Source: Zygnema circumcarinatum SAG 698-1b
Lineage: Eukaryota; Plantae; Zygnematophyceae
Length of the DNA stretch: 64,000 bases
Reading direction: 5' to 3'
NCBI GenBank assembly: GCA_037447605.1
Contig: CM074820.1
Coordinates: 1,488,001-1,552,000, forward strand
Part shown: piece after piece, positions 1 through 62,600 of the stretch
Numbering within the stretch: position 1 is the stretch's first letter
Layout of the letters: each line of letters begins with the position of its first letter
Translations under genes and position numbers: made by a program
The notes under the pieces: generated by a model
Seen by the model: the letters and a program-made list of their open reading frames with translations, nothing else
Database searches by the model: none
What the model was told of the DNA's origin: nothing

Positions 1-324
1 CGCTAGCAAACATTTTATGTTTTTTCGTGTACAGCGTGGGCTTCGAATTTTACACCCGAACAGGCTCTAATAGAAACGCGCCACGTGTAAGAAAATCAAA
101 ATAATACACGAGTTAAGAGAGACACAAAACTTTAAGAAGCAACAATTGCTTTGTGAACGAGTCAGCCAGTGGTTCTTGAAGTCGGTGATCCCTGACTTCA
201 ACTTCTTGCGGCAGAATGGACGGTGAGATTCGCAGCACGCGAAACCTCGCTAAGGGATGTGCGGGGAATTGCAAAATGTAGTAACGGCTTGGCCAGAGGG
301 CAGCAAAAGGAGATTCTGTCGGTG

Positions 325-405
325 TGATGACAGTGGGATTTGAACCCACGCCCTTTCGGACAGGAACCTTAATCCTGCGCCTTAGACCAACTCGGCCATA
401 TCATC
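325..405 (-). tRNA. tRNA-Leu (anticodon AAG)
   Basis: Reverse complement GATGATATGGCCGAGTTGGTCTAAGGCGCAGGATTAAGGTTCCTGTCCGAAAGGGCGTGGGTTCAAATCCCACTGTCATCA. It has an acceptor stem GATGATA/TGTCATC, anticodon arm CAGGA-TTAAGGT-TCCTG, long variable arm, GGTTCAAATCC T-loop and a downstream T-run terminator. Confidence 0.95.
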
Positions 406-1103: not shown

Positions 1104-2999
1104 TCATTGCTCCTTTTTGCGATTCTCCTTTGCAAGCGCTCTTTTCCGAATGCTGAGCGTCTGGCCGAAGCGGACGGAGTCCATGAGCGCCGGCGGCAGC
1201 GCGGCGACGAGCGCCCACATGATGGAGTGCGCCCAGTACGGCGTGCACCGCGGCTCGTACCCGATCCACTTCACACCGTAGCGCGCGTACCCCTCGGGGG
1301 AGGGGCACGTCAGAGAGGCGTAACGGATTTTCGCCAGTTTTGTCGCAACATAGAGAGGGGCCTGCACATGCATTCAACGGAGAAGGGCTTCTTCAGTCAG
1401 CTGCTTCATCATTGTGGGGGACAGGGACATCGGAAAGAAGAGGTCTCAGATTAGAGAACATATGCCAACCTACGAGGATTTCTAAGGAGCTTATTGGGAG
1501 GCAGTAGAGCAGGGAAATCAAGTAAGACAGAAGAAAAAAGGAAGGCTTAGCTACTTCTGAACACCTGAATGTCAAATCTCAGTTGCAGGCTTGAACGTTT
1601 CTCCGCAACAACTTTTGACGGCCATCTCATTGCCGAAGCTATGCAGACAATGATGAATTGAATGAATGATGCGGACGAAGGGAACCGACGGAACGAACAT
1701 CTTGAACATCTCTGACTGTAAGCATCACATTCGTTCAACGGTAACTAATGCAGAACTCACGCCTTTGATGCGACCTGACCTTTTAGAAGACTTAATATAC
1801 GAGTTGAGATTTTCCGCCGTACCTGGCACTGAACGTCGATTCCCTTCCCCTTGTACTCCACATAGAGAGTGCGCGAAAATTGGTCCACAAATCTGTCCAC
1901 GCGGAAGTGATTTCTATGTTAGCTTAGCGATACACGGCATGTTTGGAACAATCTAAATGTCTGAAGCTGACCGGAGATAGAGAAGGTAGTTCTCTCTTTG
2001 ACAAAACTTTGACAGTGATCGATTTTCTCTTCAATATAATGTATCCCAAGGTCCCGTGTGTCTTAAAATATATTACAGCTCAAAGAACGTCGGTTGCAAA
2101 CCAGGCAAGACTTGGCGTTCGATTCAAATATTTATGCAAACGAAGAATAAAGAAAGGGAAACACACCACTCAAGGCAGCAAACATCGCTTCTAAACCTAA
2201 TGAAACTCAGAACAAGGCTATGCACAATGCCCCGAGAAGAAAATCCTGAAAAAAAGTCTTAATAGCACACAGAAAGACCCCTAAAACTCAATGTATTCTC
2301 TCTATGTTAAGACATCATGCAAAAATGCATCAGCCTTACTTACCCTTTAGTGGCTGCGTAGAGAGCGTAGAGAGGATCCGACGGAAGAACTGTTGCAGCT
2401 CCTGAGCCGATGTTTACAACGGCCCCCTTCTTCCTCTCCACCATAGCCGGAAGCACAATCCTTGTAATGCGAGTCAGAGCTTCCACATTCACCCGAATCA
2501 GGTTAGTGATGAGCTCACTATCCACCTCATGAAAAAACTTCGCATGAGGATACGACATCCCCGCATTGTTGATCAGTATCCCAACATCGAGCTCAGAAAT
2601 TAGGGTTTCCAGAGGCTTCAAATCCTGTTCAAGCTGAGGAGAGGTGAAGTCTACTGCCACCGTTCTTGTCTTGACACCGTATTTCCCTTCCAATTCTGCA
2701 GCGACATCTGCAAGCTTCTCCGGATTCCTGCTCACAAGAATGATGTTGAGCTTGCATCTTGCAAGCTGCTTTGCGAAGGCCTTTCCAATGCCGTCAGTGG
2801 CGCCTGTAACAAGGGCCCAGGAGCCGTACTTTTTCAGGTCCTTCGCAGGGCGGAGGAAAACCACCCAGAGGGCCCAGAGGAGGCGGAAGGTGAAGCGGAG
2901 GAGGACGACGCAGCCTATGGCGGCCACGATGCCGAGGGCGAGCGCATGGAGGGGCGCGCTGAAGAGCGCGAGGAGAGAGGAGGAGGCCTCCTCCAACAT
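1104..2999 (-). CDS. KCR1: Very-long-chain 3-oxoacyl-CoA reductase (KCR1-type SDR), 3 exons: 2999-2344, 1892-1823, 1361-1104
   Basis: N-terminal TM segment, TGATDGIGK nucleotide-binding motif, NNAG and YAATK catalytic motif. The spliced junctions read ATKG|FVDQFSRTLYVEYKGKGIDVQCQ|APLYVATK, with GT-AG sites in phase. Confidence 0.92.
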
Positions 3000-4689
3000 T
3001 GCTGCAATCTCCCCTCCCTTTTTCACTCTCTCTTTCTCGTTCTCTCTCTCTCTGTTGATGAAATTTTCACGCACCACCTCCCTCTCCCTGCCTCTTCCTC
3101 CCCTCCGCCCTCCCTCCCTCCCTCCCTCTCTCGGCTCTCCCTCTCGCGCCCTCGCCGGCCGTGGCTGTCCCCAATCAGTCCCCAGTCAGTGTCCTGCACT
3201 CCCCAGGTCGGACCACTGGATCCAACCAGGATCAACCATTGAATCAATGGTTCCCAACCATTGATGCGCGACCCTGCCAACCATTGCGAATGGTCGCAAC
3301 CGTTGGATGCCAATGGTTGGCACCCATTGTCATCCAATGGTTGACAACCATTCGAATGCAGGCCGTTCATCTTCTTCGCTGTGCGCGTGGTCGTGAGCGC
3401 ACTTTGGCTCACAATGTTGTGGGGATGTTGTGTTGGCCGATCCAGCCCGCAGCCATTTATTGTCCCGTGCTGCGCACCATGAAGGCGTGGCTGTTCGTGA
3501 TGCGGCCCTCTCTCCCTCCACAAGCCCCGATGCCCGTTTGATGGCTTCCTCCGCCAGTGCGCCTATCGCTCCTTTGAGATACGCGCGCAGCGGTATCCGT
3601 CCCGGTGGTGCCCCCCCCTCCCTTCGAGCGACGTGCCACATATTGGGAACCTTTGCGGCTGCTTCTAGAGCCGTGTTGTTGAGCCTAGAAGTAGATTTCC
3701 ATTTATGGGCATTTTCTCTTTGTCCTTAGGTCCTTTGTGAACGATTCTTTTGGTTCCTCATGCTGATTTTGGCCTCGCCATCGTGAGATCAATGTCACTT
3801 CTGGTTACGTTGCGAACCATTGGACGTCCAACCCATCGCCATCCAATGGTTGTCCAATGGTTACCGATCAATGGTCCGACCTGTGCTGCAAACGACGGCC
3901 CTGGCCCCGTCTCCATGTACACATTTTTAGAAGGGTTCCCTGTTGGCAGTTTTAGTCACAGCTGCAAAGAATTTAGGCACATGACGACCTATGTTAGTTT
4001 CTGCTATATTGACCGTTGGATATGCCACTTATACAACTTCGTCAAACATGACCGTTGGATAAGCCACGCGTACACTCTCCTTGTTTCACCGTTGAATATG
4101 CCACGTGTACGCGTACGCTATCGTCAAATTGACCGTTGGATATGTCACGAGTACCTACTCGTCGTTCGACCGTTAGAGCATGCCACGTGTACAATCTCAT
4201 CAATCTGACCGTTGGATGGCGGCACGTCCACGCGGGAGCCTGGAGGCCGGGAGGCAAGTACAAGGGCAAACCCTTAGCCGTGACCGTGACCAAATCACCT
4301 AAGGACCTCGGCCATCTGCGAATCGTGTGCTGACACGTCCACCATACTCTAAAAACGTAGAAAAGGTTATTCAACGGGCAGATGTTTCAGCGAATCGAGA
4401 TCTGACACGTGGCACCACATTCTATAAATGTCGAAGGTTTCTACGATGGGCAGATGTGCTGCGACTCTGTTAAAAACCACAAAATATTGTGATGCAAAAC
4501 AGAGGGAAGGTTAAATATCACAGCGAGAAATAATGTGTTACAAATCACACAGCAGGAGCCTTCTTGCGAATGTGATTTGGAGCCACCATGCCATGAGGCC
4601 ATGCGTGCGGGCCAACATCCTCATCTCTCTAGGATTTGGGGTCGCAGTTGTGGAGCCATGCAACACGGACGGCCGGTTCTCATGACCCA

Positions 4690-7944: not shown

Positions 7945-9408
7945 CCACGCACACACGCACGCTCAACCTTGCACAGATTTTTCTGTCTTGAGGGGGCAGA
8001 ACTTAGGTCACAGATTAGTATGAGCATCTCCTGCTGCTCTTCAAAACCCCAGACCATAATTCTGTCGATCTGTCCTTTTTTTTAAGAAAGAAAGTGGGCT
8101 GTGACAGCTGTCACACGACCACTTCGTGTTGTTGGACTATCTTGTATCACCGGATTCCATCGCTCCCTTTATGCCCTACCTTCTCCGCACGCTTGCACTC
8201 ATAGCCAGCACATGGCCGGAAATTCTCCAAATTAACATCCCTGCAGGCAGCAACAGTAAGCCTTTCTCTGCCTCTGTTTTCAGTAACCTTTGTTTATTTA
8301 TGAATTGAGATCCTATCCCTTGACGACTAATCTCTAATGAACTTAAATGTTTCAGACACTCTAAATTCTCTGACTCTATTGAACAGTAAGTATTCCTTAT
8401 GTCTGAAGTGGCTTGGAAAAGCGAGGACTGATGCTTTGAAATCTTTGGGTCTGTTTTCGGGATCAGGTGAGAGTGAAATCGTGGGTGGTAGGAGGAAACG
8501 GGTCAGAGAGAGTCAAGTAGAAGAGAGCTCAAAGAGAGCTAACTGGAAGGGGGGAGTGGGAGAGGAGGGGCGAGAAGATAGTGATGGAGAAGGTAGGAGC
8601 ACCCTTAAGGAAGGAAGAGATAAGATTGGCGAAATGACTGATTTCAACAGAGGGGAAGGGGTGGAGATAGGGAGCCAACGCTGTGATTCTAGTGAATCCT
8701 TGTCGCAATCGTCAGCAGAATGGAGGGATTGTAAACTTGGGGGGAACGGAGCAGTCAATAGTGTAGAGTATGGTGGAGGGTTGGAAGGTGAAAGAATGTG
8801 TGTAGAGGGAGATGGTAGGGGAGTTAAGTCGGTGGGTAGCGAGAAGAGAGTTTTGGTGAACGGTGTGAAAACTGTCGAGTGTTTGCAAGCCCTTCGGAAA
8901 TCTATTGAACGACTTCATCAGAGCGGCCAATTTCCGTACAATCCAACGGCACTTGTGAGAAGGTGAAAAGAAATTCAGCCATTCTATTCCATTCCATCCC
9001 TTCATATTTATGAATGCTCAGACCGGGTTGCTAACTGGGCTGCTAAAATCTAGTCTTGCTTTTCCACCAGAATGCACTTAGTAATGTTTCAGTTTAAAAA
9101 AAAAGCCTAAAAGTTGCGTGAATGTGAGAGGCCTGAAAGTGATTCCAAATTAACCATGTCTGGTGAATCCCTGAGTATTATTAATCTTGAACACTCAGAA
9201 ACAGGTTTGTTTGTTTCCCGTTGACATGAAGCCTACTCTTAGCTCTGCTGCTTACCCTTGTTCTGACTGCATGTACAGACTCGTGGCTGTGGAGAGGCTT
9301 TGGATGGGAGAGGAGGGAGCGGAAGGATGCCCAACAACGCTTTCAAGCAGACAATGCTCTGACACAGCTGAACCTGCAGCTGGATACTCTTCTAGTTCTT
9401 TGTCATAG
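4690..9408 (+). CDS. Protein Lines (LINS/LINES_N + LINES_C) homologue, multi-exon; 5' end unresolved
   Basis: Exons give VRLLGCHDQVSAYGAAKKL (about 5322), LLDYLVSPDSIAPFMPYLLRTL (about 8126) and CLQALRKSIERLHQSGQFPYNPTALVRR|LVAVERLW (8880-8963 spliced to 9279). These resemble the recalled Lines motifs LLDxLIS and LxxSIERL...FPYNPxxLLR. Large open exons lie at 5635-6370, 6581-6800 and 6990-7200. Confidence 0.6.
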
Positions 9409-10077
9409 ACTTTATAGGAAGATCGAACGCCCACCGTTAGTTGATTATATCCTTTAGTTTTCTATTACCCTCTTCTCCCTTTCTTTTATTACCATTGTCT
9501 GTGTGAGAGCGTGAAGCATGGCTGAGTGCGTACTTGCTGGGCGGTGCTACTGTACGAGATCCCAAACAACATGAATGAGGAGGAAAGAAACACATCCCAT
9601 GATGAAAATCAAAAAGTGGAGTTCAAGTCGGATGGGTCCACCCCATTTCGAGTCTCTTGTTGGAAAACCACGATTGCTATTCCGACCAACCAGCTCCATT
9701 GTTGCCCAACTTGTTGGCTAACCAATCGGCTAACTCGATGGCTGACTAACAGGTGGTCAAAGGAGTGGCCCATTCTTTGAAAGAGAGGGGGTCAGAGGGG
9801 GCAGTGAAGGGCCAAATAAACATCTGGAAACGTTTTTTTTTTTTTTTTTTTTCCCTGGAAACGGACCAACAGTACCGAGCTGCATTTGCGAAGTACCGAT
9901 TACGGGGCCGAGAACTGACTTCGCGGGACAGAAAGCGCCGACTCAATTTTTTTTTTTTTGGTGCCGCGGCCACACGAGTTTGGCCATCGGGCCGTCGATG
10001 GCCGCCACGTGACAGACACGTGTGACAAACGGCCCAGATGCGCTTGCAAACGCAGGGGACTGCCCTGCTCACCGACC

Positions 10078-12797
10078 ATGGCAGCCTGCGACTTCTCCCC
10101 TTCTCAGGAAATGAGGGAGGGAGAGAGGGTGTGGGAGAGAGAGGGAGGGAGGGAGGGTGTGGGAGTGGGAGGGGTGAGAGCGGAAGAGAGGGAGAGGGGA
10201 GGGAGGACGAGGAGGAGAAGGAGGAGGAGGCGAGAGAGACCGTCAGCTAAAGATCAAGAGAGCAGCGAGGGAGGGAGACGAGAGTGAGGAAAGGGCAGAC
10301 AAAGAGAGAAAGTGTGTGAGAGAGAGAGAGAGAGTGTGGGAGAAAGAGAGAGGTGAGAGCAAGTTTTTTATTTCGTCTCCCGTACTTCTTCAGCGTTCCT
10401 TCATCCTCCTCTGGCTTTGTGAGGGTGCTCTCAGTGCAGGCATTAGAGCAGGTGACAGTGTAGGACTGCAGACTCTATAGGGTAACGCTGCATTTAGGGT
10501 GTTTTAGAACTGCTTGAAACAAGGTATCATGTTCGGTCAGGAGCTCGCCCGCCCTCGCAAAATGGAGATCCTCTGCACCTCCTACTGCGGGTACATTGCA
10601 CGGCTTGCATTCTAAACTGGGACTAAATGATAGTTATATGAAAGCTCAGCTCTTTCAGTTCGATAGGGAAAGGAAAGGGCGCAAAAGAAGTCGTGTAGAA
10701 TCGCATGCCTTCACTAAGAACTTGCTCTCTATTGCTGCACCGCCCTACCTCCCTCCCTTTCTTAGCCTTTCTCTCCGCCCCCCTCTTTCCCTTACTTTTC
10801 CCAGTCCATGCGCCCTCCCCGGGACCCTCCCCAATACTGACGTCCATATGCTCTCTTCTGCGCAATCCTTCTCACCTTTTTCCTCTCTCCCTTGCCATCT
10901 CACGCTCCTCCCCTTTCTCTCTCCTCCTGCCCCCTCCCTCATTCTCTTCCCAAACCTTTCCATACCATTCTACCACAATGAAGCATGATACACATACAGG
11001 TCTCTCTCTCTCTCTCTCTCTACTTTGTTTTAATTACAGATGTGGCCACTGCTGCGGCTGGGAGTGGGGTGTCACTCTCCCTGGAGGGAATTACCTCGCT
11101 CTGGGCGACACAGGCTCCCCTGCAGGCACTCTGAAGCCTTTGGAACTTCACCAGCCCCTTAGCGTCACTTTGCAGCGATTGCAGAGCTTTGATCTCGCGG
11201 CTTTATGTCTCAAAAATGTGAAAGTTAAGAAACGGAAAACTCGTGAGGACCTCCGGCCAGGCCTCATTTCTCGGTGATCCTCCTCTCCATACCTTAGCGG
11301 TGCTGTTTCCTTAGGTTTTATGAAAGCTTTTGTAGTTTACTTAGGTACTTCTGTGTACTTCTGTGTCTGCTTAAAGGCCCTTAAAACGCCTACATGGGCT
11401 CCTTGACGGTTTTTGAAGCCTACGATGATGTGGGAGTCAATTATGTGGGCTCTGTGTGACACGCATTTCAGAATGCCATTTGTCGAGTTCGACATTATTA
11501 ATGATTTTAAATTTTCGCAATTCTCAACGCTTAATGTTGTTTCTTAAGTTCTGTCGGTGAGTGTGCAGCTACTGGACAAGCACAGACCTAAAAGGGCTGC
11601 CATATACAGGCGTTACATCAACAGGGGCGATTCCCAAGCAGGTGAGAAGCCTAATAGTCTTGAAATACTACAAATACAAAATCATTTACTCTAAACCTTA
11701 ACCTTTAGCATCTTGTGATCCACTACGATTGCATCCTCATGTCATGTCTCTCTTCTTGTCAGGCTCGCGTACCCATTTTCTCAACTTCACAGCTTGTTGA
11801 TAAGGCTTACAAACTTCCAGTTCGAGTTTTGCTGCCTTGGACAACGCTTCCGGAGTTAGGCACCATAGCAGCAGACACACGATTCTTTTCCTTCGGAACA
11901 AGAATTCTCGTTCCGGGATATGGCTGGGGAATTGTGAGTTTTGATCCCGTTATGGCCCCATAGTCCATTTCCTTCAGCTCTACATGTGATCTAAGCATGC
12001 TTTGCTTCAAATGTGACGTCATTGTTGCTGTGTGAGTGTGCGGAGGGAGAAAGTAGGAAGGGGGGTAGAGGGAGGGGGAGGGAGAGGACAAGTGCACCTT
12101 GCGTGAACAAATGAAGGGATAGTGCGGAGAGAGTGAGAGAGCTAATGGATTCTACGTCTAAAACGGGACTGTGTGCGTGAGAGAGGGAGAGAGCAAGGGA
12201 GGAGGGATAGGCAAATAGAGAGAGAGAGAGAGAGCTACCTATCCTGTGTCAATTTACGAGGAGTTGGGTCCGACTGCATGCGTGAGCAGGTTCAGGATCA
12301 TGGCTCAGCAATTAAGGGCCGCCTTCATATTGATTTGTTTCATCGCTCCCACGATGACGCCCTCGAGTGGGGCCGGAAGGAGCTTCAGGTATAGCAAAAG
12401 CTAATTGCTCAAAACTCAAAACCACAGATGGTGAAAGTTTCCGTCTCCAGACTTGCTTCGCTAGGACTAAATTAAAAGTACCGAACGGCAGTAGTCTTGA
12501 ACAATAGAAATGGGTTGGTCGCTTTCGATGAAGATTTGTCTTCGTGCTTCTAGACGCTGACAAGGGAGGCAGAGAAATGTCGCGATTCTCTTCTCTCTCT
12601 CTTTCTTTCTCACTCTCTCTCCCCCCAGCTTTATGTCTATTCTAGCTTTCCGACCAAAAGTGAGAGGAGGATTGCAGGTTCTGGTTGTGCCACCTGGCAA
12701 GCATGTAATGGACGCGTACAACCTCCCTCAGAAAGCGCGGCCATTTGCCATCGCTCTGCACAACATTTGGAGCCTCTTTTTTGGTGTGCACCATTGA
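10078..12797 (+). CDS. 3D (Asp-Asp-Asp) domain protein, about 336 aa, 8 exons: 10078-10283, 10394-10451, 10541-10590, 11040-11273, 11569-11641, 11763-11933, 12290-12388, 12678-12797
   Basis: All splice phases are consistent. The product contains MEILCTSYCGCGHCCGWEWG, GLPYTGVTSTG, GTIAADTRFFSFGTRILVPGYGWGIVQDHGSAIKG and HIDLFHRSHDDALEWGRK, the typical 3D-domain signature with three Asp. The first two exons and the last exon are less certain than the core. Confidence 0.8.
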
Positions 12798-13298
12798 GTC
12801 TTGAAACCGAAAATGGGGGAAGAGAGATCGGGGAGTGAGGAGGTAGAGGGACGAGAGATGGGGAGAGAAAGAGAGGGTGGGGGAAGGTAAGGGACGAGGG
12901 AGCCCCTTTTGAGAGGGGTCTTGCTACAGACACCTCCGCGCCTCCTCCTTTGAAACGTAGAGGGTTTGTACATGTGCAGATTTTTGGAAAAACTAGGATT
13001 GGGGGTATGAGTTAAGGGCCGCTTCCTAAACAGAGGCGTGGGTACTATATGCGGCCAAAGCTCAAGTAGGACTTGCTATGTATTTATTCATTTTTGCGAT
13101 TTATTTCATTCATAGACTGCATTAGGGTGCTCCACGTCGGGCTAGTTTAATAGTTTTATATGCAGCAGTTTTAAATTAGGCAGTATGACAGGGGCTTCAT
13201 GTAGCACAGTGCAATCAACAGTGTCTGGATTATGAAGGTTGATCCACATCCAAGTGCTTCCAACCACTGGTCTCTAAGTAGGGACGAACCGTGTTCTG

Positions 13299-13688
13299 TC
13301 AAAGGGGTTTGCACAGACGGAGACGAATCTGGAAGTTCCAAACACAAAGGAGAATGGAACATGAATGGAGGCCATCGCCAGTTCTCATAGACAGACCCAT
13401 TGAGTCAGAGGGACTTTAGGGCTCAAAGCTGATCTTGCCTGGTTTTCACGGTTCAACGTTTTCAAAAGGTCCTTTCCATGGACCTGTGGTAAAACAAAAC
13501 AAAGCAAAACAAACAAAACCACCATGTTTGTGATGCTAGCTTTGTCCCAATCTTGTTGGTTTCTAAAAACTGAGTTATATTGGAAGTACCTTATACCATT
13601 TATAAGTATTTGAGTCCCGTGGATAGACCCCTGTGACCAGTTCACATTTGCTCTCTGTGTTCCCTTTGTTCACGTCCCATTGTTCCAT
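13299..13688 (-). CDS. Putative small spliced ORF (57 aa or more; exons 13688-13590, 13483-13439, 13328-13299)
   Basis: Canonical AAG|GTACTT donor, a very strong T-rich acceptor ending ACCACAG and a CAG|GCAAG donor, all in phase. The product is MEQWDVNKGNTESKCELVTGVYPRDSNTYKWYKVHGKDLLKTLNRENQIRLRLCKPL. No family recognised. Confidence 0.3.
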
Positions 13689-59644: not shown

Positions 59645-62600
59645 ATGGCCGCCGCCCTGCTGAGGCAGCCGCCATGGCTGCTGCCGCTGCTGCTGCTGGT
59701 GGTAGTGGTCCTTCTGGAAACCCTGCTGGGCCCTGCATCGGCGTATGGAATCCATGGCGTTGAAGGAGGTGAGGGAGCGCATGAGGACAAGACCAGTGCG
59801 GGCAGTAGTCGTTTTGTTGAACCAGTTTTTGCTTTGCCAAAATCCTTCTGCTTTCTGGGTGTTCTCGATCTGCTTAAAATATTAAAAAAAAATTACGCTC
59901 CTCCTCAACCAGTCTCCTCTCCCATCCTCCCCTTTCCTTCACCTCCTCCTCTCCGCGCAGAGCTGACAGAGAACGGCGACTTTGTCCAATCTCCTAACGC
60001 CACGTGGCACGTGACGGGACGCCACGTGGCGTTCCTGAACGACAGCAGCCGCTCTCTTCGCGGGCGCTCGGCCGCCTCCCGCTATGTGCTCCTGCCAGCA
60101 GGTTCGCATCACCTCATACGGGAATTCCCTCCCTCTCTCTCCCTCCCTCCCTCCCCTGCCTCCCTCCCTCCCTCCCTCCCTGTTCTTCCCTCCTCCCTCC
60201 CTCCCTCCTCCCTCCCTCCCTCCCTCTCCCCAAGCCCTCCTCCCTCCCTCCCTCCCTCCCTCCTCCCCTGTTTCTCCTCTCCTCCTCCCTTTCCTCCTCC
60301 TCCCTCTCCCTCCTCCTTCTTCCCTTCTTCCTTCCTTTCCTTCTCTCTCCTCCTCCTTCCTCCATCCCTCCTCACTTCCTCCTTCTCCTTCCTTCTCTTC
60401 CCTCTGTCTCTTCTCCTCCTCTCTTCTCCTCCTCCTCCTTCTCCCTCCTCTTCTCCTCTCTCTTCCTTCTTCCTCCTCCTCCTCCTCCATCCTCTTCTCC
60501 TCCTTCCTTCCTTTCCCCTTCTCCTTCCTTCCCTTCCTCTTTCCTTTCCTCCTTCCTTCTCCTCTTTCCTTCCTCCTCCTCCCTCTCCCTCCCGCTGAGT
60601 GCGAGTGGGCGGCCTGCAGTGCCCGGGCAGGCGGTGTGGCAGGCGGTGCGCACGACACGTGGCGCGGCCTACCGCGGGCGCGTGCGCGTGCAGTCGGCGG
60701 CGCTGGAGGGCGGCCCCGCGGAGCTGCTGCTCACCGTCGCGGACCGCCGCGAGGGGGCGCTGCTCGCGATGGACTTCTTCGCCGAGAGGCTGAGGTGTTC
60801 TCCGGTTCAGTCCGGTCCTGCCAGGGAGTGGGAGGCGTGACGGCGTGACGGCGGGGGGGTGCCACGTGGCGGGCGCAGACGCGGAGTGCGGGACGGAGCG
60901 GTCCTTCGAGTTCGGTGGCGCGGCAGTGACGTCGCGGCAGGGTTTCGCGGCTCCTCCCTCCCTCCGCGCGGCGGAGCGGAGGACGCGGGCAAGGGGCGGT
61001 TCGGCGCACCTCTCGCCGTGGCGGGCCTGCTCGGGTGAGGGGAGGGGAGGGGGGAGAGGGAGAGGGGGAGGGGGAGGGGGAGGGGGAGGGGAGGGGGAGG
61101 GGGAGGAGGGGGAGGGGGAGGGGGAGGGGGAGGGGGGAGGGGGAGGGGGAGGAGGGGAGGGGGAGGGGAGGGGAGGGGAGGGGGGAGGGGGAGGGGGAGG
61201 GGGAGGGGGGAGGGGGGGAGGGGGAGGGGAGGGGGAGGGGAGGGGGAGGGGGAGGGGGAGGGGGAGGGGGAGGGGAGGGGGGAGGGGGGGAGGGGGGAGG
61301 GGGAGGGGGGAGGGGGAGGGGGGAGGGGGGAGGGGGAGGGGGAGGGGGGAGGGGGAGGGGGGAGGGGGAGGGGAGGGGGGAGGGGGGAGGGGGGAGGGGG
61401 AGGGGGAGGGGGAGGAGGGGGTGGTGCAGGGAGGGGAGGGGAGGGGAGGGGGGAGGGGGAGGGGAGGGGGAGGGGGGAGGGGGAGGTGGAGGCAGGAGGG
61501 GGGGAGGGGGAGGGGGAGGAGGAGGGGAGGAGGGGGAGGGGGAGGGGGAGGGGAGGGGGAGGGAGGGGAGGGGAGGGGGAGGGGAGGGGGAGGAGGGGAG
61601 GGGGAGGGGGAGGGAGGGGAGGGGGAGGGGGAGGGGGAGGAGGGGAGGGGGAGGGGAGGGGGAGGGGGGAGGGGGAGGGGGGAGGGGGAGGAGGGGAGGG
61701 GGGGGGGGAGGGGGAGGGGGAGGGGAGGGGAGGGGGAGGGGGGGAGGGGGAGGGGGAGGGGAGGGGGAGGGGGGAGGGAGGGGAGGGGAGGGGGAGGGGA
61801 GGGGGAGGGGAGGGGAGGGGAGGGGGGAGGGGGAGGGGGAGGGAGTGGCGGGGAGGGGGAGGGGGGGAGGGGGGAGGGGGGAGGGGGGAGGGGGGAGGGG
61901 GAGGGGGAGGGGAGGGGGGAGGGGGGAGGGGGAGGGGGGAGGGGGAGGGGGGAGGGGGAGGGGGAAGGGGAAGGGGAGGGGGGATGGGGGGATGGGGGGA
62001 TGGGGGGATGGGGGATGGGGAGGGGGTTTTAGCACGCATTAAACTTGTTGTATTCTTAAACTGCCAGGGAGTGTGGCGTCGCCGCAAAACTCAAGGAGCC
62101 CCAATGTGGTCAACGTCATGTGAGTAGGCCTTCTTCAAACTAGCCACAAACGCACCAGTTTTTAGAATTATATTCAGCGCACGATGAATTGGAATGTAAA
62201 GAAACTGCAAACTCGAAACATGTAGGTAAAAGTCGAAACTATCTATTATAAACTCAGAAAGTACGTCTGTCACGTGGTAAATTGGTCCTCAAGTATGGTG
62301 TTTAAACCATGGTCTGCGGCCAATTATTGCTCCTGCGTACATAAGATAACACTTGTAGGAAGATGGGCTTGAGGAAGTGCCAACATGTGTCTGTGACTTT
62401 ACTTCGGTCTCCCTTCCATTCTCAGACATGGCTATCCTTCGGACCCAACTGCTGCCCCTCTCCCTCTCTTTCTCAGAACCATGCTTAGACCTGTTGACCA
62501 TCCTGAACCCTCTCTCCCGCCCCTACCCACCAGCCGTTCTTTCCAGGTCCCAAAGAGAAAGCTGCTCTCCCTCGCTTCTCCAACTTGGCGTCGTCCTCCT

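Follow-up and report, generated by a model that had tools for sequence, protein, structure and literature searches.

Which task could a domain typical of bacterial cell-wall proteins have in the nuclear genome of a zygnematophyte alga, and how did it get there? The question is raised by a window of 64,000 nucleotides of Zygnema circumcarinatum SAG 698-1b (GenBank assembly GCA_037447605.1, contig CM074820.1, positions 1,488,001 to 1,552,000), in which a first-pass annotation, made from the letters alone, had placed an intron-containing gene with a bacterial-type 3D domain; positions given here are those of this whole window. Our reading is that the gene is expressed and that its product, a leaderless single-domain protein of 252 amino acids, would be a lytic transglycosylase of the MltA/YuiC type, a zygnematophyte paralogue with plastid peptidoglycan as its most likely substrate. 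We hold this reading with somewhat less than even confidence.

Gene Structure and Expression

Transcript evidence was provided by contigs of four public runs from four studies, which were placed on positions 9300-13600; the mapping masks the repeat stretch upstream of 10354, and exon ends were set by the GT..AG rule where the contig joints left bases ambiguous. Spliced contigs are present in each of the four runs and define six exons and five GT..AG introns on the plus strand (Table 1), the joints at introns 2 to 5 being reported as GT..AG by all four. A 1810-nt contig of run X1, for example, covers 10354-10589, 11039-11272, 11568-11638, 11760-11933, 12290-12385, and 12675-13486. The coding sequence (10529-12797) amounts to 62 + 234 + 73 + 171 + 99 + 120 = 759 nt, i.e., 252 codons and the stop, and the eukaryotic gene as a whole spans about 10.2 to 13.5 kb of the window. 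The eight exons of the first-pass annotation are thus replaced by the six that the spliced contigs of four studies define. Its broader claim, an intron-containing nuclear 3D gene on the plus strand for which spliced transcripts should exist, is upheld by the five spliced introns and by eukaryotic neighbour genes.

The mRNA is contiguous over 10354-10589, and ATG 10529 is the first possible start because an in-frame TAG stands before it at 10505-10507. Tandem repeats of the (GAGG)n type lie further upstream, at 10113-10206 and 10297-10352. What had been read as a Glu/Arg-rich N-terminus with a run of eight arginines (10078-10350) is repeat DNA in the 5' untranslated region (UTR) or upstream of it, closed off by the TAG; a Pfam scan of the open reading frame (ORF) 10078-10284, which had been assigned to this N-terminus, gave no match. 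Three full-length relatives align collinearly with all six coding exons, residue 1 of P0039 corresponding to position 10529. The leader comprises about 15 residues and is directly followed by the conserved CTSYCG-CGHCCGWEWG segment, and in the predicted structure of the closest relative (P0001) the first barrel strand begins at residue 13. With a leader of about 15 residues ahead of the first barrel strand, neither a signal peptide nor a chloroplast transit peptide can be accommodated. An extracytoplasmic signal (signal peptide or lipobox) was looked for and is absent from the window protein, whereas the bacterial relatives have 36-57 leader residues. The earlier statement that the protein carries neither a transit nor a signal peptide is therefore correct, but the reason lies in the shortness of the real N-terminus and not in a Glu/Arg-rich extension.

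Long GA- or CT-rich low-complexity tracts are found at 10113-10352, 10750-10960, 12030-12230, and 12800-12900, that is, in the 5'UTR, in introns 1 and 4, and at the start of the 3'UTR. When translated, these tracts imitate Glu/Arg/Gly-rich protein. In one low-depth contig of run X4, 626 nt are missing between two GA-rich tracts (window 12236-12863). The gap has AC..GG ends and most likely reflects a misassembly at the repeats, not a splice.

Domain, Active-Site Residues, and Fold

The window exons were searched one by one, and the long-type relatives P0001, P0039, and P0040, which are of the same type as the window copy, served as proxies for fold and tree. The 33 amino acids of exon 12290-12388 alone match PF06725 (3D) with an E value of 1e-8 and 35.7 bits, above the cut-off of 23.8, which confirms the domain assignment; the full-length relative P0001 scores 48.3 bits, and exons 1-4 and 6 taken singly give no Pfam match. 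Exons 4 and 5 match consecutive segments of YuiC of Bacillus subtilis (chain positions 73-97 and 98-129) and likewise of the NCBIfam SpsC profile (130-154 and 155-186). Single-exon sequence matches to the PDB are weak (E about 0.3).

The three Asp residues of the 3D signature (in AADT, QDHG, and HIDL), which had already been recognized, align with D129, D151, and D162 of YuiC, equivalent to D261, D297, and D308 of MltA, and are invariant across the 74-sequence alignment. Residue numbers and roles are taken from the YuiC structure paper, in which YuiC D162/MltA D308, matched by the HIDL Asp, is the catalytic acid (PMC4499186). The Thr and Tyr of CTSYCG occupy invariant columns of the family and, judged from the TAY motif, probably correspond to YuiC T91 and Y93. 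The catalytic residues are thus intact in the window protein. The CxCxxCCGW prelude is present as CGCGHCCGW. The insert of roughly 70 residues noted between CCGWEWG and YWTST counts 68 residues from WEWG to YWTST; the corresponding spacing is 12 residues in the bacterial relatives and 36-41 in those of the canonical green type.

The closest stored relative, P0001 (254 amino acids, 50-74% identical per exon to the window protein), was folded with the 74-sequence alignment, giving an AF2 model with pLDDT 88.2 and pTM 0.81. Its best structural match is YuiC (Z 11.0, 99 residues, 32% identity), and MltA of Neisseria gonorrhoeae is found at Z 10.6 with a root-mean-square deviation of 1.6-1.9 over 85 residues, while expansins and kiwellins score lower (Z 6.5-7.9). 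The C-terminal helix spans residues 237-251 of the model with high confidence. The predicted fold, as seen on this proxy, is a double-psi beta-barrel of the MltA/YuiC type, in line with the bacterial-type fold that had been proposed. No Pfam match to expansin was obtained for the window exons or for P0001.

The Green-Plant Family

A representative protein search with exon 4 only (11763-11933) yielded 38 proteins and was widened by word and profile searches and by cluster look-ups. The family is present in chlorophytes (Pyramimonas, a pedinophyte, and Myrmecia), streptophyte algae (Mesostigma, Klebsormidium, Chara, Spirogloea, Mesotaenium, Closterium, and Netrium), liverworts (Marchantia, Calypogeia, and Riccia), mosses (Physcomitrium, Sphagnum, and Ceratodon), lycophytes (Selaginella and Diphasiastrum), and ferns (Adiantum and Psilotum). 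Among seed plants it was found in the conifer Cryptomeria and in two angiosperms, Tasmannia and Colocasia, and is rare in the latter group. All green members are named only "uncharacterized" or "3D domain-containing protein", and a literature search by 3D domain, lytic transglycosylase, horizontal transfer, locus identifiers, and plastid peptidoglycan found no paper on any plant member. Of the earlier caveat that the family might prove both widespread in eukaryotes and already characterized, the first half is accordingly true for green plants, but no characterizing paper was found.

The canonical green proteins are leaderless, have about 211 amino acids, start with MPP, and always have 18 residues ahead of the CC motif. 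Compared with the bacterial proteins, green members have lost the leader and gained two features, namely a loop, of 36-41 residues in the canonical type, that contains a hydrophobic stretch and a polybasic cluster, and the C-terminal helix. The polybasic cluster is kept in the green-specific loop (KVKKRK at window 11071-11273; RKKG, KRRKK, or RRRRK elsewhere) and is absent from the bacterial relatives; it could mediate acidic-lipid binding or be a nuclear localization signal.

Some variation within the family was also observed. In the prasinophyte-type members P0043 (Pyramimonas), P0024, and P0020, the Cys cluster and RYW are separated by an insert of about 100 residues, in which two hydrophobic stretches are rich in Gly and Ala. 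If this insert is a membrane hairpin, as it could be, part of the green family would be anchored in a membrane. Among the database isoforms of canonical members, some lack precisely exon 2 or exon 5 and others retain intron 4 (P0196 of Netrium, P0002 from Logan, P0184 and P0197 of Cryptomeria, and P0007, isoform X2 of Physcomitrium). Their breakpoints fit the conserved intron positions, and skipping of exon 5 deletes two of the three Asp residues.

Phylogeny and Origin

A phylogeny with bacterial and eukaryotic homologues had been suggested as a check on the gene. In the maximum-likelihood tree (74 rows, the window copy being represented by the long-type proxies), bacteria and all green sequences are split at 100/97. 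The long-type clade (P0001, P0039, and P0040 from Netrium) has a support of 100/99, sits on a long stem of 0.59-0.91, and falls inside the green side of the tree; the canonical zygnematophyte proteins form a clade of their own (98/88). When the long-type and canonical zygnematophyte sequences are forced into one clade, the likelihood improves and p-AU is 0.575, so that a duplication within Zygnematophyceae is not rejected. In the free tree, the long type takes a basal position in the core green clade, a placement that we treat as long-branch noise because the constrained tree has the better likelihood.

Per exon, the identity of the window copy to long-type proteins is 46-88%, as against 35-67% to canonical ones. 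Long-type orthologues are present in at least three other zygnematophyte data sets, among them Netrium digitus, in which both types occur, and the long type has been seen so far only in zygnematophytes. The canonical gene of Closterium (L082) has six exons like the window gene, all five window introns match it in position and phase, and the exons of 73, 171, and 99 nt have the same lengths in both; exon 2 accounts for all 31 extra codons of the window gene. The chlorophyte Myrmecia (L083) has three of these five introns in common with it. These comparisons identify the window gene as a fast-evolving paralogue of the canonical green 3D family.

On the bacterial side, a scan with one genome per species gave 428 genomes with relatives, the best 80 of which were examined. 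Most of these belong to Desulfobacterota and a smaller number to Myxococcota, Verrucomicrobiota, and Binatota; no cyanobacterium is found among the best 80 of the 428 matching species genomes, which leaves a cyanobacterial (endosymbiotic) origin unsupported. The nearest relatives are lipoproteins of Desulfobacterota and Verrucomicrobiota; the bacterial proteins have 170-200 amino acids, a signal peptide and lipobox Cys, and a spacing of only 12 residues from the Cys cluster to RYV. That all green members lie on one side of the branch separating them from bacteria fits a single ancient transfer, earlier than the split of chlorophytes and streptophytes. From the trees and intron positions it is concluded that introns were gained early, that a DNA-level duplication took place within or at the base of Zygnematophyceae, and that fast evolution of the window copy followed. 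Of the two routes named in the first-pass annotation, an old horizontal or an endosymbiotic acquisition, an old transfer is supported by the 100/97 branch and by introns shared between streptophyte and chlorophyte, but its cyanobacterial version is not.

Two details of the bacterial set are mentioned here. The sequence L041 from an archaeal metagenome-assembled genome (MAG; Candidatus Methanocomedens) is near-identical to L056 from a Desulfobulbaceae MAG (branch lengths of 0.0055 and 0); the archaeal assignment probably stems from a binning error between syntrophic partners. In Desulforhopalus vacuolatus (L031:959-3453), the 3D lipoprotein gene begins 4 nt before the mutL stop, the two genes overlapping; downstream, the opposite strand carries glgC and a PfkB kinase, and wall-related neighbours were not seen there.

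Changes Specific to the Long Type

The alignment contains 57 columns that are conserved in at least 85% of both the canonical green and the bacterial members. The window copy keeps 48 of these, including the Thr, the Tyr, four Cys, and the three Asp, and one of the remaining nine could not be read. In the motifs themselves it has L..TSYC, QDHG, and HIDL, as compared to the canonical E..TAYC, EDRG, and RIDL, and hence differs from the canonical motif set. The Ala of TAY is replaced by Ser in four of four long-type sequences, and the Tyr-Pro that precedes FGT is Phe-Ser in long-type sequences, or Tyr-Gly in Netrium. As judged from the alignment, these replacements, together with those of a Glu and an Arg in all four long-type sequences that are described below, look like coordinated changes beside the active site.

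Comparison with Known Systems

The closest experimental counterpart is YuiC/Sps (stationary-phase survival) of B. subtilis (PDB 4wjt, 4wlk, and 4wli), a minimal double-psi beta-barrel of the MltA type like the algal protein. The three Asp and probably the Thr/Tyr pair are common to both, and the product of YuiC is a 1,6-anhydro sugar. YuiC is secreted, forms a domain-swapped dimer, and has no Cys cluster, whereas the algal protein is leaderless, contains CxCxxCC, and adds two inserts, one of them specific to the green lineage, and the C-terminal helix. MltA (GH102) of Escherichia coli and N. gonorrhoeae (PDB 2ae0, 2pi8, 2g5d, and 2g6g) has the 3D domain and the D308-equivalent Asp in common with the algal protein, and its chains align with the proxy P0001 over about 85-102 residues at Z 8-10.6. 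However, MltA is an outer-membrane lipoprotein of about 340-400 amino acids with a large inserted domain B, and the algal protein has neither feature.

The same subfamily includes uncharacterized lipoproteins of Desulfobacterota, Verrucomicrobiota, and Myxococcota annotated as "3D domain-containing", such as that of D. vacuolatus, whose identity to canonical green members is about 45-50%. The shared motifs are TAYCxCxxCC-W-x-x-G, RYV/RYW, the PW helical insert, GTIAADT, FGTRMxVPGYGWG, EDRGxAIKG, and RIDLY. These lipoproteins differ from the algal gene in having a signal peptide and lipobox and the 12-residue spacing and in lacking the C-terminal helix and introns. The canonical green proteins (Marchantia MPTK1_1g05360, Physcomitrium, Selaginella LOC9636806, Chara CBR_g23764, and Closterium), like the window copy, are leaderless and carry the basic-cluster insert and the C-terminal helix.

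More distant parallels concern the transfer of wall genes to a nucleus. Moss MltB and VanY, which belong to other protein families, are bacterial-type wall hydrolases encoded in a plant nucleus and reportedly tied to chloroplast division (Utsunomiya et al. 2021, PMID 33078277, as cited in PMC12681378 and PMC13075712). RlpA shares the barrel fold. In aphids, the bacterial wall-metabolism gene rlpA is reported to reside in a eukaryotic nucleus and to be expressed beside a wall-bearing partner, but the lineage is another one, the subfamily is RlpA and not 3D, and the partner is a symbiont and not an organelle (PMC9116674). Expansins and barwin-like proteins match in the barrel only, and the expansin features (signal peptide, Cys pattern, and CBM63 domain) are absent from the algal protein.

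Proposed Function and Alternatives

Activity, substrate, and location are proposed here from sequence comparison. In the suggested mechanism, a glycan strand of N-acetylglucosamine (GlcNAc) and N-acetylmuramic acid (MurNAc) would bind along the barrel groove. The HIDL Asp would protonate the glycosidic oxygen and then aid the attack of the MurNAc C6-OH on C1, producing a 1,6-anhydroMurNAc end, and the Thr and Tyr of CTSYCG would orient the catalytic residues. The substrate would most likely be the thin peptidoglycan layer of the plastid envelope, or glycan strands freed from it, the window copy being specialized relative to the canonical one. A role in plastid murein is proposed because of the distribution of the family. 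It occurs in lineages reported to have plastid peptidoglycan genes (prasinophytes, Klebsormidium, Marchantia, Physcomitrium, Selaginella, ferns, and a conifer), and this pattern is similar to that described for the retention of the complete Mur/PBP gene set (PMC12681378).

Several points weigh against this assignment. Plastid peptidoglycan sits between the envelope membranes, and the main difficulty is that the N-terminus is too short for a transit or signal peptide, which leaves the access of the protein to the substrate unexplained. The Glu two residues before the TAY Thr is Leu or Val, and the Arg two residues before the catalytic Asp is His, in all four long-type sequences; both residues are near-invariant in the family, and activity or specificity may have changed. 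The occurrence of the canonical type in the trebouxiophyte Myrmecia and in two angiosperms may count against the assignment as well. Furthermore, the fold and tree evidence was obtained on the proxies rather than on the window protein itself. Finally, the moss plastid peptidoglycan hydrolases are MltB and VanY, of other families, as cited in PMC12681378 and PMC13075712.

The alternative with the highest weight, possible although on the unlikely side, is a new function, in which the barrel would act on, or only bind, a non-peptidoglycan glycan in the cytosol, e.g., chito-oligosaccharides, free N-glycan cores, or the polyglucan of the outer plastid-dividing ring. The absence of a leader, the long stem of the long-type clade, the replacement of the two family-invariant residues beside the active site in all its members, and the 31 extra codons in exon 2 speak for it, as do the cleavage of penta-GlcNAc by YuiC (PMC4499186) and the fold shared with expansins and kiwellins. 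However, the three Asp, the Thr/Tyr pair, and most family-conserved positions are kept, none of the present results points to an alternative substrate, and the dividing-ring idea comes from the red-algal literature. The missing leader would also suit a cytosolic protein of defence or clearance, which would cut the peptidoglycan of bacteria or their wall fragments or salvage wall fragments exported from the plastid, and the aphid case provides a precedent for transferred wall-metabolism genes (PMC9116674). We consider this role quite unlikely: a lytic transglycosylase needs a polymeric glycan, which is not expected in the cytosol, and a conservation over about a billion years together with the loss in most angiosperms fits an organelle-linked role better.

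The fast evolution and the changes beside the active site could also indicate that the duplicate is decaying or that it regulates the canonical copy without being catalytically active. This is very improbable in view of the intact reading frame, the canonical splice sites throughout, the spliced transcripts assembled in four studies, the orthologues in at least three other zygnematophyte data sets, Netrium included, and the 48 family-conserved columns that are retained. Bacterial contamination or a false gene model, for which the bacterial affinity of the domain and nothing else speaks, is refuted and has practically no probability left, given five spliceosomal introns confirmed by spliced contigs, intron positions common to Closterium and in part to Myrmecia, and eukaryotic neighbours, namely the LINES_C and short-chain dehydrogenase ORFs.

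A more far-reaching reading is also conceivable, although unlikely. Green plants would keep leaderless lytic transglycosylases that bind membrane surfaces through the hydrophobic and polybasic green-specific loop, outside the canonical import route, and the zygnematophyte duplicate, with its Glu and Arg replaced, would have shifted to another glycan or another step; it may, for example, clear released glycan strands or remodel a cytosolic glycan at the plastid division site. If this is true, these would be the first eukaryotic lytic transglycosylases. The cutting of chloroplast peptidoglycan in growth and division is only partly known, with MltB and VanY alone tied to it in moss, and the present family, being deeply conserved, of bacterial origin, and rare in angiosperms, is a testable candidate for plastid-wall cutting, knockouts being feasible in Marchantia and Physcomitrium. 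The absent import leader raises the question of the site of action, and the second copy of zygnematophytes is a natural experiment on enzyme divergence after duplication.

Features of the Locus

The coordinates of the gene and of the other features are collected in Table 1. The two upstream ORFs look like exons of ordinary eukaryotic genes. At the far end of the window, positions 60001-62000 form a 2-kb stretch with 74.6% G+C and a strong G skew.

Table 1. Features of the 3D gene and its surroundings (window positions)
Feature	Position	Strand	Remarks
Short-chain dehydrogenase ORF	2340-3074	-	PF00106, 8e-32; upstream neighbour
ORF ending in Lines C-terminus domain	8337-8963	+	PF14695, 6e-11; upstream neighbour
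tRNA-Leu (anticodon AAG)	324-405	-	Rfam 58.3 bits and ARAGORN
5'UTR	10172-10528 (upstream limit approximate)	+	contigs reach 67-182 nt upstream of 10354; includes GA-rich tandem repeats
Coding exon 1	10529-10590	+	start Met, short leader, first barrel strand with conserved Thr and Tyr (CTSYCG); ends in phase 2
Coding exon 2	11040-11273	+	CxCxxCC-GWEWG cluster, then 68-residue lineage-specific insert with basic KVKKRK; ends in phase 2
Coding exon 3 (73 nt)	11569-11641	+	RYWTST...GxPYxGxTSxG strand region; joint 11273/11569 in four runs
Coding exon 4 (171 nt)	11763-11933	+	helical insert, then first half of 3D: first Asp (GTIAADT), FGT...PGYGWG
Coding exon 5 (99 nt)	12290-12388	+	second half of 3D: putative substrate-binding Asp (QDHG) and catalytic Asp (HIDL)
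Coding exon 6	12678-12797	+	last barrel strand VLVVPPGK, green-lineage-specific C-terminal helix, stop codon 12795-12797
3'UTR	12798-13486	+	unbroken contigs from 12675 to 13486 in all four runs

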